Source: Octopus bimaculoides (lineage: Eukaryota). Taken from it: a stretch of 63,983 bases of DNA. This document shows positions 141-63,225 of this stretch, one piece after another; the stretch's first letter is position 1; the number at the start of each line of letters is the position of its first letter. A program made the position numbers and the translations under genes. Below the pieces are notes generated by a model, which saw only the letters and a program-made list of their open reading frames with translations, was not told the DNA's origin and searched no databases. The stretch lies in NCBI RefSeq assembly GCF_001194135.2, contig NC_068995.1:13693407-13757389 (forward strand), written 5' to 3'.

Positions 141-700
141 TATATATATATATATATATAAACACTTCTCCAAAACCATGAAACTGAGATTTGTTTTGAC
201 TGGGTCAAGTTTCCAAACCTAAGCGGCAACAACAATTTTAATTAACCCTTTCATTAATGACAACCTTAATGTACAAGTCAGTATTATACTCTAAATTTTT
301 AATGCAAATATTTTCACTTATGGTGACCTGATACAAATTTGACTAAATTTTCAAATAACAAGATTCCTTAAAAATTATCAAAATTTGGTTTCAAATAATT
401 GCCAATTAATTGCTATTTTTACCAATTTTGTATAAACTTGTGTTATTTCTCAAGTATATAAAGCTGGTTGTTACATGGCACTTTTTATATGTTATTCATT
501 ATTTTTCAGATAATTTTGAGCATTCATGGAATAAGATATCGCATCTGGAAACAGTCACTAGAGTATATATTAAGGTCTTATATTTTCATTCATTTGTTCA
601 GTTTTTCTATAAAATCAAATTTTGTTTTCCAAATTGAATTCATTAATTATATTAGGAAGTGATTGCATTTAATTTACATTATTTTCCTTCAAATCTAGTT

Positions 701-2182
701 ATGAAAATGTTTTCTGGAGTTTATAACCAAAGTTGCTTAGTAAAATATGATAAACATTTGTATAAAATCAAATTAATGTATAAAGATACTAATCCCTTGA
801 CGAATGTTGAAGCTAGAACTGAAAACAGTGGTGAAATTGAAGAAGTTATTCGTGCTATATTAAATTTATTTCTGACAGATGCACAAGTGCCAAGTAAGAT
901 TCTTACCTTAAATTATTTGATTGATATTTCATTTAAGTTTTGGAAAATTACTCAAACGATAAATTTTTATTCAAATGGGAAGAAACTGAAATGTAAATTT
1001 TACATTAAGTTATCCATTTATTCTAATCAGTCAATGCATATTAATTATATGACTGTTAATAACATTAGTGATTGTAAAATGAAACAGAAATTTCCCTTGC
1101 CCCCCACTTCTTCCCCTTCCTCCTCAAACAGGTATTTCTGTAACAAAGGTCCTCTGGCAGATCTTAGGAATATGAAATTGAGAAAGAAGCATCATTTGAT
1201 TACCAGTGGAATTGATGCCTCATTCAAAGAACATTTCTTAAGCCACTCAAGCTACCTAGGAGAACATTTAGCTCATCTGAATATTCAAAATAACTCAACA
1301 GCTCTTAGAAGACTTGATCTGTTCTCTGGAAATGGCACTGAAAATTGCAATACATTATTTCTACATAGCCACAATGAAAATAATTTAAAACCAGCTCCTA
1401 AATTACACTCAAGTGCTCATCTTAATTCATTTAATTCATTATTATTTAATAAAAACCAAAATTACAGTATAGGTGACTTGTTAAAAATACAATTGCAGCA
1501 AAATGCTGCTAAGACAAAAGAGAGCAACTCTTTGCAATATTTTATCTTATTAATCAATCGGTGCAAATTATCTGAAGAATATGCTTCACAGTTTTGCAAA
1601 TACACAGAATATCATTTTTCTGCTTTTGACCGAGCACAAAAGATTAAGAGCTGCTTAAAAATTAAGACAGTTGTAATAAAATATTTAACATGTTGTTCTC
1701 TGAATTACCGCTCAAGAAATCAGATTACTGGAACCTACTTACGGAAAAACCAGTCTGCTAAAAAGAAACATATTTGGTTTAAAAAGAGGATGCAAGGACA
1801 ATCTCCAAGAGAAATAGTAAAGAAAACTTGTTGTATTAGGAAAATCTCTTTTAAGAATCAGATTAGAAAATGGAAATTGAAGAAGAATGATCAGAAAAGT
1901 TTGAAAACAGAAGAAGATTCAGAGAAGATAAAACTGGAAAATCTGAAGAAGTTGCAAAAGGAAGTGCCAGAGAAACTAAGCACAAAAGCTCCAAAGAGGT
2001 CAAGAAAGGAAGATCTGAAATTTAAAAAATTCAACAAAGGTAGTAGTAGTCGAAATACTGCCACTGATGTTCAGAATGAGATATTCTTCAGACCAAATGA
2101 CAGATATTCTGTTCAAATCCAAGAACTTCAAGAAGACCTTAAACTTCAATATTTGGCTAATTTGACAACAGAGTTGGATTGA
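701..2182 (+). CDS. Uninterrupted 493-aa ORF; N-terminal ~108 aa MAJIN-like, C-terminal third Lys/Arg-rich
   Basis: The frame is open for 507 codons (659-2182) in AT-rich DNA, far beyond chance. ATG at 701 follows a pyrimidine-rich ...TCTAG acceptor-like site by 2 nt. Motifs LYKIKLMY...EIEEVIRAIL...T-x11-W have the same spacing as human MAJIN VYKFKIRY...ELEDSVRVVL...T-x11-W (recalled). Coding status is high confidence; the identity is moderate. Confidence 0.8.
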   Translation: MKMFSGVYNQSCLVKYDKHLYKIKLMYKDTNPLTNVEARTENSGEIEEVIRAILNLFLTDAQVPSKILTLNYLIDISFKFWKITQTINFYSNGKKLKCKFYIKLSIYSNQSMHINYMTVNNISDCKMKQKFPLPPTSSPSSSNRYFCNKGPLADLRNMKLRKKHHLITSGIDASFKEHFLSHSSYLGEHLAHLNIQNNSTALRRLDLFSGNGTENCNTLFLHSHNENNLKPAPKLHSSAHLNSFNSLLFNKNQNYSIGDLLKIQLQQNAAKTKESNSLQYFILLINRCKLSEEYASQFCKYTEYHFSAFDRAQKIKSCLKIKTVVIKYLTCCSLNYRSRNQITGTYLRKNQSAKKKHIWFKKRMQGQSPREIVKKTCCIRKISFKNQIRKWKLKKNDQKSLKTEEDSEKIKLENLKKLQKEVPEKLSTKAPKRSRKEDLKFKKFNKGSSSRNTATDVQNEIFFRPNDRYSVQIQELQEDLKLQYLANLTTELD

Positions 2183-6884: not shown

Positions 6885-6984
6885 NNNNNNNNNNNNNNNN
6901 NNNNNNNNNNNNNNNNNNNNNNNNNNNNNNNNNNNNNNNNNNNNNNNNNNNNNNNNNNNNNNNNNNNNNNNNNNNNNNNNNNNN
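6885..6984. other. Assembly gap (100 N)
   Basis: Run of N. Confidence 1.
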
Positions 6985-10535: not shown

Positions 10536-13500
10536 AGATGTATTTATCATTGAAAACTAATCAGGGTAATGTGTAGAACTTTTACGTTAGAAATACTCAG
10601 CATATACCCTTATCTTGCAATGTATATGAAAAGAATGCACTATCTTTGTTATGCACAATTGAAACCCAAAGCAGAAAAATATTAACATATAAATTTCACA
10701 ATAATAGATTATAGTAAAGTGGGCATTAAAATACTCAGTGTAATACCCACCAAAATTACTCCTATTGTAATCATTTAAATTATTCATTTCCAAGCAGAAT
10801 TAGTAGTTTGGATAACTGTTCTCATCACTAAAGCTGTAATTTTAATAACATTATTTCATGCTGCATACATCCCTGGGCATTTCCCTCTTGCCAGTTTTTA
10901 AAAATAACTGTACCACTCCTTATCTGCATAGTTCTGAAAAGTACCCAGGATGCCCCACAGAAAAATGCCCGATATAATCATCAATATCAGTGGGAGAAAT
11001 GAGATTGTTTCTCAGGGCAGACAGGGAAAACATACTATTGATGTATTAGTGACAACATAGCAGCACACAATATGCATCCACTCAATAGATTACAGTCAAC
11101 TACTAAAATAGACTGACTAATAAAAACTGCCTGACCAGTGTGAATGATAGGCACATACAAGAATGTAACTATTTGGATATCTGAATTAGTCTCCTAACTT
11201 GAGTAGCAGACAAATCATCAGTTTTAAATGATGTGTGTGTAGCAATATATGTAAAAGGGCATACAATTCTTAATACACCAGCCAAACTATTTGGAAGAAA
11301 TACATTTAAAGATGTCTGTAAATTTTTGGACTGGATGTTATTTTTTTTTTGCCTCAGTCATCCTTTTAAATAATAGTGTGACACCCAATTTAACTGGTTT
11401 TAGTAAGTACCCAGTATGTATTACAGAGAAATACAATATCATTACCATTATCGATTGGCTAAATGAAATCATATCCCAATGCAGACATCAAAATTGATTC
11501 CTATTGAAAAATTGGTTGATGTTACAGAGAAAATAATTAAATATAAGGATGACAAGACAGCAGCAATGCTGTAGTAAGCAATATTAGCTACATAACCAAT
11601 TATCAAAACAGCTTGACCAATGAAACGAGGCTGACTAATGAAAATGATAGGTATATATATAAACATGCAAATATCTGAATAAGTAAATTAGTCACCTGAA
11701 AGACTGCAAACCATAAAATATAACGATTAAATCCTCAGTTTAAATGTTTATACTCAAACAAATAGATAATTCTTAAAACACCAGATAAACTAAATGAACA
11801 AATTTAAAAGTGAAACATTTTATTAAACTAGGTAGAGATGTTTACTATCTAAAGAAAAATATTCTCAAATTTTAAGATTGGTTGTTATTTGCTGATTTGC
11901 CTCTTATTTTTTAAGAAGAGTTGGTGTCAAGAAGGGCATTCGGTTGTAAAACCGAATGCCCTATCTTGTATGTGCATATTCATCTAATCCATGCTGGTAT
12001 GGAAAAATGGATGTAAAACAAATGAATGATGTTAAACAATAATCTATCATAGCTAATAGAATATAAAAACAGGTATATTTTAGTATTTTTCAGAGAGGTT
12101 TGCTGTTATGATAATATTCAATCAGATTTTCATTTTGGTCTATGGCAATCCTCATTGTAACTGAATAATTGATACGGCTTGAGGAAATTCTCCAGGTGTG
12201 ATTGCATCACGAATGAGGATTATCTTATCTTTGAGATGGTTCTATGCTATTGGCTTGTCATTATGGTGAAACTTAGACTTTTGGCAAACCAAGAATTTAA
12301 GTCTGAAAATGTGGGGAAGGAGAGCAAGCATGAAGGCAACTTCTATTGATGATTTTGTCCTCTGTGAATGCTGCAGTGAGGATCTGTTTGGCACTTGCAG
12401 CAAAGTGTTGCACTGGTGCTTTATTTTGCTGCCACTTGAGGGGCAAACATAATTGCAGCAACTCTAGATAATTGTTGCTGTCATCAGTATCATTAAAGAA
12501 CAGTGTTAAGTGACTGTATTGAAACAAAAATGCCATGAACACACACAATTTTGGTGAATGTAATGAACTGACCACTTCATCAAATGGGAAGGAGGATTTA
12601 TCAGACCAGTGGATATTAGCGATAACTTTTGATTATCAAAGGAGCCAGTGAGCAAATTACAAATGTTATGGCTTATCTTTCATTTTTAAAGTTTGCATCA
12701 TCATCATCTTAAAAGTATACAAAATTGTGAATACTTTGTCTGCAGGTTAACTAGCAATACTACTTGGTGACTGTGCATAACTTCATCAACTGTCACTTCC
12801 TTCAGAGATGGACAATCAATTTCATTTTTACCCAAGTCACTTCCTATCTCCTAATGTATTTTTTAAAAAAATATTTTTTTTATTATTATTAATCATGCAG
12901 CTGTTGGTGACAGAAAAGGCTGGTGGCAAGACAATACTGAGATTTATGCAGTAACATAATTTCTACATGTGTATTGTTGTCCATGAGTAAGAGATTATAA
13001 TTGAACAGTATGAAGGTAAAACTTTACATATTGTAAAAGTTATTACGAAATATAAACTGGTGTAATATGTCATATTTTAAAACTAACAATCAATCCAAAA
13101 ATTTAGATATTTTTCTTATAAACTGTCCTAACTAGTTTCACTTTCACTATTTAAAAAATTGTATGTAAATGTGTACAAAGCACCTGCAGTACTCTTCTGC
13201 TGGTGCTACAACAAAACCCCATACATGCTGTGCTCCTTCTACAGTAATTGTTGAGGAAGAGAAGCTTCCCTAGTGTTGGTGCTATGAAAAATGCACCTAC
13301 TGTAAAGTGATTGGAAAAGTGATCAAAGCAAGCATAGGGTTATGAAGTTCCATTAGTTCTGGTTTGCTGGGGACTATTTAATCTCTCTAATGTGGTGCCA
13401 CCAGAAAATGCACCAACTGCACTCAGTAAAGTGGCTGGTGATAGGCAGGGCATCCAGTTGTAGAAAGCAAGTCAAAGGACATGTATGAGCGCTTGTCTTT

Positions 13501-13823: not shown

Positions 13824-13873
<50 letters not shown>
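13824..13873 (+). repeat. Poly(A) tract, 50 nt
   Basis: Uninterrupted A run. Confidence 0.95.
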
Positions 13874-16976: not shown

Positions 16977-17775
16977 NNNNNNNNNNNNNNNNNNNNNNNN
17001 NNNNNNNNNNNNNNNNNNNNNNNNNNNNNNNNNNNNNNNNNNNNNNNNNNNNNNNNNNNNNNNNNNNNNNNNNNNNNNNNNNNNNNNNNNNNNNNNNNNN
17101 NNNNNNNNNNNNNNNNNNNNNNNNNNNNNNNNNNNNNNNNNNNNNNNNNNNNNNNNNNNNNNNNNNNNNNNNNNNNNNNNNNNNNNNNNNNNNNNNNNNN
17201 NNNNNNNNNNNNNNNNNNNNNNNNNNNNNNNNNNNNNNNNNNNNNNNNNNNNNNNNNNNNNNNNNNNNNNNNNNNNNNNNNNNNNNNNNNNNNNNNNNNN
17301 NNNNNNNNNNNNNNNNNNNNNNNNNNNNNNNNNNNNNNNNNNNNNNNNNNNNNNNNNNNNNNNNNNNNNNNNNNNNNNNNNNNNNNNNNNNNNNNNNNNN
17401 NNNNNNNNNNNNNNNNNNNNNNNNNNNNNNNNNNNNNNNNNNNNNNNNNNNNNNNNNNNNNNNNNNNNNNNNNNNNNNNNNNNNNNNNNNNNNNNNNNNN
17501 NNNNNNNNNNNNNNNNNNNNNNNNNNNNNNNNNNNNNNNNNNNNNNNNNNNNNNNNNNNNNNNNNNNNNNNNNNNNNNNNNNNNNNNNNNNNNNNNNNNN
17601 NNNNNNNNNNNNNNNNNNNNNNNNNNNNNNNNNNNNNNNNNNNNNNNNNNNNNNNNNNNNNNNNNNNNNNNNNNNNNNNNNNNNNNNNNNNNNNNNNNNN
17701 NNNNNNNNNNNNNNNNNNNNNNNNNNNNNNNNNNNNNNNNNNNNNNNNNNNNNNNNNNNNNNNNNNNNNNNNNNN
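16977..17775. other. Assembly gap (799 N)
   Basis: Run of N after a poly(A). Confidence 1.
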
Positions 17776-21242: not shown

Positions 21243-21252
21243 NNNNNNNNNN
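21243..21252. other. Assembly gap (10 N) at a (TA)n
   Basis: Run of N. Confidence 1.
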
Positions 21253-29555: not shown

Positions 29556-30126
29556 NNNNNNNNNNNNNNNNNNNNNNNNNNNNNNNNNNNNNNNNNNNNN
29601 NNNNNNNNNNNNNNNNNNNNNNNNNNNNNNNNNNNNNNNNNNNNNNNNNNNNNNNNNNNNNNNNNNNNNNNNNNNNNNNNNNNNNNNNNNNNNNNNNNNN
29701 NNNNNNNNNNNNNNNNNNNNNNNNNNNNNNNNNNNNNNNNNNNNNNNNNNNNNNNNNNNNNNNNNNNNNNNNNNNNNNNNNNNNNNNNNNNNNNNNNNNN
29801 NNNNNNNNNNNNNNNNNNNNNNNNNNNNNNNNNNNNNNNNNNNNNNNNNNNNNNNNNNNNNNNNNNNNNNNNNNNNNNNNNNNNNNNNNNNNNNNNNNNN
29901 NNNNNNNNNNNNNNNNNNNNNNNNNNNNNNNNNNNNNNNNNNNNNNNNNNNNNNNNNNNNNNNNNNNNNNNNNNNNNNNNNNNNNNNNNNNNNNNNNNNN
30001 NNNNNNNNNNNNNNNNNNNNNNNNNNNNNNNNNNNNNNNNNNNNNNNNNNNNNNNNNNNNNNNNNNNNNNNNNNNNNNNNNNNNNNNNNNNNNNNNNNNN
30101 NNNNNNNNNNNNNNNNNNNNNNNNNN
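29556..30126. other. Assembly gap (571 N)
   Basis: Run of N between a (TA)n and an RTE 3'UTR repeat. Confidence 1.
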
Positions 30127-31860: not shown

Positions 31861-32055
31861 TCTTACTCTTTCCTTGTTTCAGTCATTTGACTGTGGCCAT
31901 GCTGGAACACTGCCTTTAGTCGAGCAAATTGACCCTAGGACTTATTCTTTGTAAGCCAACTACTTATTCTATTGGTCTCTTTTGGCGAACCGCTAAGTTA
32001 TGGGGACGTAAACACACCAAGCGATGATGGGAGACAAACACAGACACACAAGCAT

Positions 32056-32088
<33 letters not shown>

Positions 32089-32252
32089 CGACGGGCTTCT
32101 TTCAGTTTCCGTCTACCAAATCCACTCACAAGGCTTTGGTTGGCCAGAGGCTATAGTAGAAGACACTTGCCCAAGGTGCCACGCAGTGGGACTGAACCTG
32201 GAACCATGTGGTTCGTAAGCAAGCTACTTACCACACAGCCACTCCTGCGCCT
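31861..32252 (-). mobile_element. CORE-type tRNA-derived SINE, family A (~390 bp)
   Basis: Head AGGCGCAGGAGTGGCTGTGTGGTAAG, B-box-like CCAGGTTCAGTCCC, CORE-like GGCACCTTGGGCAAGTGTCTTCTACTATAGCCTC, internal (TA)/(TG) microsatellite, AAAGAGT-type tail. Confidence 0.88.
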
Positions 32253-44504: not shown

Positions 44505-44569
44505 NNNNNNNNNNNNNNNNNNNNNNNNNNNNNNNNNNNNNNNNNNNNNNNNNNNNNNNNNNNNNNNNN
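44505..44569. other. Assembly gap (65 N)
   Basis: Run of N. Confidence 1.
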
Positions 44570-51896: not shown

Positions 51897-52297
51897 TCTC
51901 TTTTACTCTTTTACTTGTTTCAGTCATTTGACTGTGGCCAGGCTGGAACACCGCCTTTAGTCGAGCAAATCGACCCCAGGACTTATTCTTTGTAAGCCTA
52001 GTACTTATTCTATCGGTCTCTTTCGCCGAACCGCGAAGTTACGGGGACATAAACACACCACCATCGGTTGTCAAGCAATGTTGGGGGGACAAATACAGAC
52101 ACACAAACATATACACACACACATATATATATATGACGGGCTTCTTTCAGTTTCCGTCTACCAAATCCATTCACAAAGCTTTGGTCGACCCGAGGCTATA
52201 GTAGAAGACACTTGCCCAAGGTGCCACGCAGTGGGACTGAACCTGAAACCATGTGGTTCGTAAGCAAGCTACTTACCACACAGCCACTCCTACGCCT
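51897..52297 (-). mobile_element. Family A CORE-type SINE, young full-length copy
   Basis: High identity to 31861-32252 and 59289-59696. Confidence 0.88.
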
Positions 52298-53697: not shown

Positions 53698-54181
53698 NNN
53701 NNNNNNNNNNNNNNNNNNNNNNNNNNNNNNNNNNNNNNNNNNNNNNNNNNNNNNNNNNNNNNNNNNNNNNNNNNNNNNNNNNNNNNNNNNNNNNNNNNNN
53801 NNNNNNNNNNNNNNNNNNNNNNNNNNNNNNNNNNNNNNNNNNNNNNNNNNNNNNNNNNNNNNNNNNNNNNNNNNNNNNNNNNNNNNNNNNNNNNNNNNNN
53901 NNNNNNNNNNNNNNNNNNNNNNNNNNNNNNNNNNNNNNNNNNNNNNNNNNNNNNNNNNNNNNNNNNNNNNNNNNNNNNNNNNNNNNNNNNNNNNNNNNNN
54001 NNNNNNNNNNNNNNNNNNNNNNNNNNNNNNNNNNNNNNNNNNNNNNNNNNNNNNNNNNNNNNNNNNNNNNNNNNNNNNNNNNNNNNNNNNNNNNNNNNNN
54101 NNNNNNNNNNNNNNNNNNNNNNNNNNNNNNNNNNNNNNNNNNNNNNNNNNNNNNNNNNNNNNNNNNNNNNNNNNNNNNNNN
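53698..54181. other. Assembly gap (484 N)
   Basis: Run of N inside the RTE 3'UTR. Confidence 1.
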
Positions 54182-54560: not shown

Positions 54561-54787
54561 CAAGTTGTCTTCTATTATAGCCTCAGGCCAACCAAAATCT
54601 TGTGAGTGGATTTAGCAGACTGAAACTGAAAGAAGCCCATCGTATATATATGTGTGTCTTTGTGTCTGTATTTGTGTCCCTCACCACCACTTGAGAACCA
54701 GTGTAGGTGTGTTTACGTCCCTGTAACTTAGTGATTCACTAAGAGAGACCAATAGAAAGAAGCCCATCGTATATNNNNNNNNNNTCG

Positions 54788-56555: not shown

Positions 56556-56945
56556 ATATTCTTTTACATGTTTCAGTCATTTGACTGTGGAGATGATGGA
56601 GTACCACCTTAAAGGGTTTTAGTCGAAGAAATTAACCCCAGTACTTATTCTTTGTAAGCTTAGAATTTATTCCATCAGTCTCTTTTGCTGAACTACTAAG
56701 TTATGGGGATATAAACACACCAATATCAGTTGTCAAGCAATGGTGGGAGGGAGGTACAAACAGACACAAAGACATACACATGTAAATATATATATATATA
56801 TCTATATATATACATATATATAAACACACACACACACAGAGGCTCCTTTCAGCCTGGGGCTAAAATAGAATATACTTGTCCAAGGTCCCACACAGTGGGA
56901 TTGAACCTAAAACCACTTGGTTGGGAAGCTACTTAATCACAAGGG
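56556..56945 (-). mobile_element. Family A SINE, diverged
   Basis: Tail, microsatellite and degraded head all recognisable. Confidence 0.75.
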
Positions 56946-59288: not shown

Positions 59289-59696
59289 TTTACTCTTTTA
59301 CCTGTTTCAGTCATCTGACTGCGGCCATGCTGGAGCACTGCCTTTAGTTGAGAAAATCGACCCCAGGACTTATTCTTTGTAGGCCTAGTACTTATTTTAT
59401 CGGTCTCTTTTTTTTTTGCCGAACCGCTAAGTTACGGGGACGTACACACACAAGTATTGGTTGTCAAGCGATGGTGGGGGAACAAACACAGACACACATA
59501 CGTATATATATATATATATATATACATATATACGACGGGCTTCTTCCAGTTTCCGTTTACCAAATTCACTCACAAGGCTTTGGTCGGCCCGAGGCTTTAG
59601 TAGAAGACACTTGCCCATGGTGCCGCGCAGTGGGACTGAACCCGGAACCATGTGGTTGGTAAGCAAGCTACTTACCACACAGCCACTCCTGCGCCT
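59289..59696 (-). mobile_element. Family A CORE-type SINE, young full-length copy
   Basis: CpG-rich; intact head AGGCGCAGGAGTGGCTGTGTGGTAAG and B-box-like CCGGGTTCAGTCCC. Confidence 0.88.
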
Positions 59697-62723: not shown

Positions 62724-63225
62724 ACTCTCTCTCTTTTACTTGTTTCAGTCATTTGACTGTGGCCATGCTGGAGCACCACCTTTTGTCGAGCAAATCGACC
62801 CCAGGACTTATTCTTTGGATGCCTAGTACTTATTCTATCAGTCTCTTTTGCCGAACCGCTAAGTTACGGGGACATAAACACACTAATCTTTTATTTGTTA
62901 TAGTAATTAGAATGCAGCCATACTGGAGCACTCTCTTGAAGAATTTTATGTTGAATGAATCAATCCCAGCATTTCTTGGTATCTTTTTGCCAAACTGCTA
63001 TGCTACTGGGACATACATACACCAACACTGGTTGTCAAGCAGTGGTGGGGGACAAACACAAAGACACACACGCACACACATATACTGAGCTTTTTTCAGT
63101 TTATATCTACCAAATTCACTGGTTTTGGTTGGCCTGAGGTTGTAGTCGAAAACACTTGCCCAAGGTGCCACACAGTGGGTCTAAACCCAGAACCATGTGG
63201 TTGGGAAACAAACTTATTATTACAG
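62724..63225 (-). mobile_element. Family A SINE with an internal insertion of a related fragment
   Basis: Tail at 62724-62885, inserted segment at about 62886-63020, then microsatellite and head. Confidence 0.75.

Follow-up and report, generated by a model that had tools for sequence, protein, structure and literature searches.

An atypical and strongly diverged MAJIN-family protein in Octopus bimaculoides

Within a 63,983-nucleotide stretch of the Octopus bimaculoides genome (NCBI RefSeq assembly GCF_001194135.2, contig NC_068995.1, positions 13,693,407 to 13,757,389 of the forward strand; hereafter the window) we found a gene whose product is an atypical, strongly diverged and previously unrecognised member of a known family, that of MAJIN, the linker between meiotic telomeres and the nuclear envelope. 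The reading frame at 701..2182 is in all likelihood a real, intron-free and fast-evolving protein-coding gene and the octopus representative of this family. Homology of residues 1-110 to MAJIN is supported by sequence profiles that pass through intermediate relatives, and the same residues are predicted to form a MAJIN-type beta-grasp core, which is followed by a lineage-specific linker and by a C-terminal motif common to the same relatives. An initial annotation, made from the letters of the window, had proposed a highly diverged cephalopod member of the TERB1-TERB2-MAJIN complex, and the family assignment is borne out for both homology and predicted fold.

The reading frame and its annotated start

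The frame runs from an ATG at 701 to a TGA at 2180-2182, encodes 493 amino acids and begins MKMFSGVYNQSCLVKYDKHLYKIKLMYKDTNPLTNVEARTENSGEIEEVIRAILN. The start position and the N-terminal sequence are exactly those that the initial annotation had given, and the first 110 codons and the PLPPTSSPSSS linker lie where it had placed them (Table 1). From stop to stop the frame spans 508 codons, compared with 160 for the runner-up in any frame of the 64-kb window, and the probability of encountering 493 stop-free codons at the local base composition is ~8e-19, the locus being AT-rich with ~30% GC around the frame. The nearest public match of the window is Octopus sinensis, and the comparison set comprised three octopus species: the window itself, O. 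sinensis CM016874.1 (L002) and a Logan contig from run SRR11869391 (L001). The full-length frame is also open in O. sinensis (L002 9392-10861) and in the Logan contig (L001 603-2069), and all three species have the stop codon at the same position. Insertions and deletions within the coding sequence (CDS) are all multiples of three (3, 12, 9, 3 and 3 nt in one nucleotide comparison, 3, 3, 3, 3 and 3 nt in the other); those in the flanks of the same octopus alignments measure 1, 2, 6, 10 and 35 nt. The best-conserved segments of the protein are residues 1-110 and 456-493, in each of which 87% of the residues are invariant among the three species, and the least conserved is residues 346-455, with 53% invariant.

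The existing gene models do not contain the beginning of this protein. The model annotated in this genome (P0002; Table 1) has Met158 as its first residue, and that of O. sinensis, "uncharacterized protein LOC118766591" (P0003, 286 residues, L002 10001-10861), is likewise truncated at its N-terminus and begins at a different Met codon. Both models cut away the sole recognisable domain. Upstream of the frame, 190 nt 5' of the ATG, a polypyrimidine tract followed by CAG is conserved at 499-512 (tcattatttttcag, then ataat; ~400-415 in L001), and judged by its sequence it could be a candidate splice acceptor of an intron in the 5' untranslated region (UTR). Because the gene sits at the extreme left end of the window, any exon upstream of this site falls outside the window.

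Homology and predicted fold of the N-terminal domain

We used HMMER to search 1.84 billion representative proteins with a profile built from the three octopus sequences only (A1). There were just seven matches, namely the window's own product and six relatives (P0004-P0009), with E-values from 4.5e-18 to 3.3e-4, and the search yielded no second octopus-like match. Each of the matches was double: profile positions 1-108 aligned to the very N-terminal end of the target, and another stretch aligned to its C-terminus. P0004 and P0005 are the nearest relatives, with 35-40% identity in the N-terminal domain. Three others pass the gathering score of 27 bits of the Pfam MAJIN model (PF15077): P0007, which is Patella caerulea KAK6177680.1, at 28.7 bits, P0009 at 28.2 bits and P0008 at 27.9 bits; P0006, at 17.9 bits, stays below it.

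A second profile, made from the N-terminal family alignment of eight sequences (A3), was searched against 177,635 distinct sequences of the PDB. The only protein it matched was human MAJIN (6GNX, 6GNY and 6J08), end-to-end and with E-values of 3.8e-8 to 2.4e-7, the next entry standing at E=0.23. With a profile confined to the cephalopod-type sequences (A4: the three octopus sequences, P0004 and P0005) MAJIN again ranked first in the PDB, though at E=0.09. In hhalign comparisons A4 reached a probability of 76.5% against human MAJIN alone and of 99.6% (E=1e-23, 107 columns) against human MAJIN combined with P0006-P0009. Homology of residues 1-110 to MAJIN is thus supported at the level of sequence, family membership being transitive via P0007, P0008 and P0009. 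Word-indexed homologue searches added nothing to this: with the full-length family alignment the search was swamped by low-complexity candidates, and with the N-terminal alignment it gave no matches, which probably reflects a limit of the indexing and not biology.

The initial annotation had set the octopus N-terminus against a human MAJIN sequence. That sequence is accurate, agreeing with the PDB chain in the HMMER output, and the register proposed on its basis is the one given by both HMMER and hhalign. The YKxKxxY block starts at octopus residue 21 and human residue 23; the E(L/I)E(D/E)xxRxxL helix aligns ungapped from residue 45 in octopus and residue 47 in human; and, after one 4-residue insertion between this helix and the following Thr, the T-x11-W, W-x7-F and W-x14-L spacings are kept. 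The start Met falls within two residues of the start of the family, as had been claimed.

The structure of residues 1-115 was modelled with AlphaFold2 (AF2) from alignment A3 and no templates, giving a predicted local distance difference test (pLDDT) score of 78.6 and a predicted template modelling score (pTM) of 0.73. The model has strands at residues 10-16, 19-27, 66-68, 72-80 and 100-108, a helix at 43-58 and a loop before the last strand. This predicted layout matches the MAJIN fold, a beta(2)-alpha-beta(3) beta-grasp with an inserted hairpin (PMC6297230). When the model was compared with 350,542 PDB chains in Foldseek, the top seven matches were all seven MAJIN chains (6GNY, 6GNX and 6J08), with E-values of 9.5e-6 to 1.5e-4, a probability of 1.00 and template modelling (TM) scores of 0.58-0.72; the eighth match had E=0.059 and a TM score of 0.23. 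Profile and structure searches therefore both give a significant match to MAJIN, and in neither does another family match better. On the predicted model, octopus residues 1-110 form a MAJIN-type beta-grasp core, the fold that provides the groove for the TERB2 peptide. The full-length protein, modelled from the 3-sequence alignment, has a pLDDT of only 30.8.

Linker, C-terminal motif and the remainder of the window

Between the core and the C-terminus the octopus protein carries a long linker whose best match to the linkers of the relatives, in a six-sequence database, has E=0.44 and is not significant. Its net charge peaks at +9 to +13 per 40 residues. In P0004 the linker holds, at residues ~195-330 (L003 ~10585-10990), 3-4 tandem copies of a ~40-residue unit (IPTDIAGPTENLFGSVVGPVLLHNQEKPPDQSVINKHHT), and the DRF-V motif recurs in partial form upstream of the true motif in that protein. 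A resemblance of the octopus linker to the P0004 repeats, of the form TENxxLF...LHNxxKP, was ruled out as not significant.

The C-terminal element ends ...NDRYSVQIQELQEDLKLQYLANLTTELD and carries the octopus form of the family motif, DRYxVxxxELxEDLKLQxLA. Eight of its residues (D467, R468, E475, E478, K481, L482, Q483 and L485) are invariant in 8 of the 8 family sequences. A hidden Markov model (HMM) of the non-octopus C-termini has this element as its sole match in the window (E=4e-9), and likewise in O. sinensis. The octopus proteins end eight residues past the motif and therefore do not have the tail that their relatives keep after it, for example RKRxSxLxxxxxxIVTPxKR or KKxRSFxxxxxxGYFLR. 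We looked for a displaced exon that might encode this tail by running the C-terminal HMM of the relatives against six-frame translations of the window, with its 62 kb downstream of the gene, and of L002; only the known motif was recovered. The T-rich 3' flank (2183-2240; L001 2070-2130; L002 10862-10920) reads FNVTEAFVFLFVFVLSKFL in L002, and a peptide resembling it in L001, in the frame of the stop codon. Because a 2-nt deletion breaks this frame in the window, we take the flank to be non-coding and not a read-through anchor; stop-codon read-through to a hydrophobic peptide is ruled out by this and the other frame-breaking indels of the flank.

The six relatives share the octopus arrangement of an N-terminal MAJIN domain, a divergent linker and a C-terminal DR[YFH]xVxxxExxE[ED]xKLQxLA motif, and those with genomic DNA (the P0004 locus, the P0008 contig and Patella; L003, L005 and L009) are also single-exon genes. 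They differ from the octopus proteins in the tail after the motif and in retaining a TR dipeptide where octopus has SC. None has a classical hydrophobic helix: in a Kyte-Doolittle scan over 19 residues no family member, octopus or other, reaches the value usual for a membrane helix. In Patella caerulea (JAZGQO010000010.1; L009 15277-21248) the MAJIN-family gene stands ~4 kb upstream of the gene for the beta subunit of phenylalanyl-tRNA synthetase (FARSB). A tblastx search for synteny, with this FARSB neighbour against the 62 kb that follow the octopus gene, gave no match.

With vertebrate MAJIN (PF15077; 6GNX, 6GNY and 6J08, with TERB2) the octopus protein shares a beta-grasp core placed right at the N-terminus, an unchanged register of YKxKxxY, the E(L/I)E(D/E)xxRxxL helix, T-x11-W and W-x7-F, and a long, poorly conserved linker with basic stretches after the core (PMC6297230). 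It differs in being a 493-residue protein, against ~250 residues, encoded by a single exon; in having its basic stretch distal and not proximal to the core; in being without the C-terminal transmembrane helix; in having Cys, Asp and Ser in place of Arg14, F73 and Y75; and in its DRY...KLQxLA motif, which is not detectably covered by the Pfam MAJIN model. This model gave no match to the isolated C-termini of the family, and constructs from which the linker had been deleted rose in score by only 4-6 bits, one of the alignments extending to position 219 of the 238 in the profile.

The remainder of the window contains an interspersed repeat family of ~400 nt which looks like a short interspersed nuclear element (SINE) or other transposable element (TE). 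Its copies (Table 1; more lie on the minus strand) are 69-94% identical to one another, recur in the O. sinensis flank (L002 1292-1692 and 7090-7461) and have reading frames that repeatedly yield the peptide ...RLQSDL..FLQLDALPN.NHS.... Several of the assembly gaps adjoin simple TA/CA repeats or copies of this family, and the long reading frames seen at the gaps were all rejected as being created by the runs of N. Scans of the window against Rfam and for tRNAs yielded no match.

Table 1. Features of the octopus MAJIN-family gene and of the rest of the window (window positions)
Feature	Position	Strand	Remarks
Complete single-exon CDS, octopus MAJIN-family gene (very probable)	701..2182	+	493 codons plus TGA stop
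Predicted N-terminal MAJIN-type beta-grasp domain, residues 1-110	701..1030	+	profile, hhalign, AF2 and Foldseek matches
Lineage-specific linker, residues 111-455 (345 residues)	1031..2065	+	not significantly similar to relatives' linkers
Low-complexity P/S stretch PLPPTSSPSSS in linker, residues 132-142	1094-1126	+	
Cys-rich, predicted-helical stretch in linker, residues ~257-345	1469-1735	+	AF2 helices, very low confidence
Strongly basic stretch in linker, residues 346-455	1736-2065	+	37 K+R against 11 D+E
Conserved C-terminal element, residues 456-493, NEIFFRPNDRYSVQIQELQEDLKLQYLANLTTELD	2066..2179	+	DR[YFH]xVxxxExxE[ED]xKLQxLA
Stop codon	2180..2182	+	same position in window, L001 and L002 (three octopus species)
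Annotated protein model P0002, this genome	1172..2182	+	336 residues, Met158 start; omits whole MAJIN-like domain
(TA)n run just upstream of conserved block	141-160		
50-nt poly(A)	13824-13873		
(AC)34	50871-50939		
Copies of the ~400-nt repeat family	31865-32252, 51906-52297, 59293-59696, 56568-56720, 62731-62883		
Assembly gaps (N runs)	6885-6984, 16977-17775, 21243-21252, 29556-30126, 44505-44569, 53698-54181, 54775-54784		

Proposed role, alternatives and meaning

Human MAJIN is unstable when TERB2 is absent. In mammals the MAJIN core forms dimers and has a C-terminal peptide of TERB2 wrapped around it, DNA is bound through a basic sheet surface of the core together with patches in the linker, and a C-terminal helix anchors the protein in the inner nuclear membrane (PMC6297230, PMC6361898, PMC7509418). 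Functional analogues of MAJIN are MJL-1 of C. elegans and Bqt4 of fission yeast, which serve in meiosis or at the nuclear envelope as adaptors that join chromosome sites to LINC complexes (linkers between nucleoskeleton and cytoskeleton); both are rapidly evolving and not easily recognised from sequence (PMC9908027). Each spans the membrane once and is without discernible sequence homology to MAJIN, and the octopus protein is the reverse, with MAJIN homology and no membrane pass. We propose, at what we would call even chances, that the octopus protein is a meiotic chromosome-to-envelope adaptor. It would still act in meiotic prophase, linking chromosome ends, or DNA, to the nuclear envelope. 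The N-terminal core would have a TERB2-like partner peptide and DNA as its ligands, and the basic linker would increase the affinity for DNA. Protein contacts, for instance with the part of a SUN protein that faces the nucleoplasm, and not a membrane helix of its own, would attach the protein to the envelope, and the conserved C-terminal motif may contribute to it. In the mouse, MAJIN binds the nucleoplasmic domain of SUN1 with its N-terminal as well as its C-terminal part (PMC7509418), so that tethering without an anchor is conceivable. Action inside the TERB1-TERB2-MAJIN complex we can only infer.

A number of observations weigh against this proposal, and several of them also speak for a MAJIN-derived gene that has left its ancestral job and evolves under relaxed or changed selection, either as a soluble nuclear DNA or chromatin binder or as a gene on its way to being lost. 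The octopus protein has no transmembrane segment in the Kyte-Doolittle scan, for which no vertebrate positive control was run, its 19-residue maximum of 1.07 lying inside the core and its last 63 residues reaching at most -0.23; and the tail that follows the motif in all other family members, an R/K-rich and a short, partly hydrophobic part, is absent. Human Arg14, which forms a salt bridge with TERB2 Asp191 (Dunce 2018, PMC6297230), belongs to a Thr13-Arg14 dipeptide that is TR in all other family members and SC in the three octopus species only, with Cys12 as the octopus equivalent of the arginine. In the hhalign alignment the human dimer-interface residues F73 and Y75 correspond to D75 and S77, positions that are variable in other relatives too. 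Of the basic-surface residues mutated by Dunce et al. (PMC6297230), two in six are retained, K24 and K26 as octopus K22 and K24, with M, D, P and I in place of R28, K31, R34 and R81. By Pfam score, too, no core in the family is more diverged than the octopus one, which has none (P0005 scores 14.6 bits and Patella 28-34 bits), and the Cys-rich, predicted-helical stretch and the very basic linker of the octopus protein have no counterpart in the relatives. Over the whole CDS the ratio of non-synonymous to synonymous substitution rates (dN/dS) is 0.5-0.7, indicating weak purifying selection, and substitutions in the octopus comparisons are spread nearly equally across codon positions. In the survey of da Cruz et al. 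2020, MAJIN, TERB1 and TERB2 were identified, without paralogues, across many animals, bivalves and gastropods among them; its tables have a single entry for Octopus bimaculoides, a TERB1-like protein that has no MYB domain, and no cephalopod MAJIN or TERB2 is listed (PMC7227075). We found nothing else relevant in the literature on MAJIN with cephalopod or octopus. On account of the lost tail, the change from TR to SC, the two of six basic residues kept and the most diverged core, a changed or lost job is the main rival, and one that we regard as somewhat unlikely. Against it, the frame is intact across the three species with in-frame indels only, the two elements common with distant relatives are the ones most conserved among octopuses, and dN/dS, at 0.24-0.77 in the first 135 codons, falls to 0.24-0.46 for the N-terminal domain in two of the three comparisons. 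Moreover, the relatives that pass the Pfam MAJIN model are also without a classical hydrophobic helix, and the absent helix may therefore not mean lost function.

Two further alternatives concern the N-terminal domain itself. Identity between the octopus and human MAJIN proteins is only 16-20%, a pairwise BLASTP against the human core yields 23 bits (E=4e-4 for the single comparison), and the octopus protein on its own, full-length or as residues 1-115, has no Pfam MAJIN match even at E<=10 and, in phmmer, no match among all PDB chains. Simple searches therefore miss the octopus MAJIN, as the initial annotation had predicted for BLAST, and because the protein alone lies below the Pfam and PDB thresholds its family membership rests on intermediates. 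Such figures would also fit a chance match of a lineage-restricted orphan in an AT-rich genome rich in K, I, N and F codons, a reading that we find scarcely credible: every link of the chain is individually significant, from the A1 E-values of 4.7e-7 to 3.3e-4 among 1.84 billion proteins through the Pfam gathering score and the PDB match to the combined hhalign comparison, the fold matches that of MAJIN only, domain position and protein start both coincide, and the same proteins have an independent C-terminal motif in common. Nor do we see much to recommend the view that codons 1-157 are untranslated 5' UTR, the true protein being the 336-residue model from Met158 and the MAJIN-like domain a relic, although P0002 and P0003 both start downstream of that domain; we hold it to be very improbable. 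The region 701-1168 is stop-free in the three octopus species, with a probability of ~2e-6 per species at this composition, its sole indel is one in-frame indel of 3 nt, and nowhere is the locus better conserved than in 701-1171, with 94.6-95.5% nucleotide identity where the flanks have 83-93%. What it encodes is a confidently predicted fold with deep homologues that share the same start Met, and the disagreement of the two models on the start is the pattern expected from truncated transcript evidence.

The octopus gene reveals no new kind of system, and its interest lies within the known family. It fills the cephalopod MAJIN gap in the 2020 survey of TERB1, TERB2 and MAJIN (PMC7227075) and corrects two annotations, the locus models in this genome and in O. 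sinensis. The intermediate sequences make cephalopod members of this fast-evolving family findable, and the conserved C-terminal motif is offered as an element whose role can be tested. A broader interpretation, which we think unlikely, would be that MAJIN is a non-membrane protein in this branch of the animals, with the C-terminal motif an ancestral dock to the envelope or to LINC, used with or without a short tail, and with octopods possessing a minimal, anchor-less linker, possibly without the canonical TERB2 contact. For research on meiosis, the octopus protein provides a natural variant of MAJIN that has neither a membrane anchor nor the TERB2-contacting arginine.

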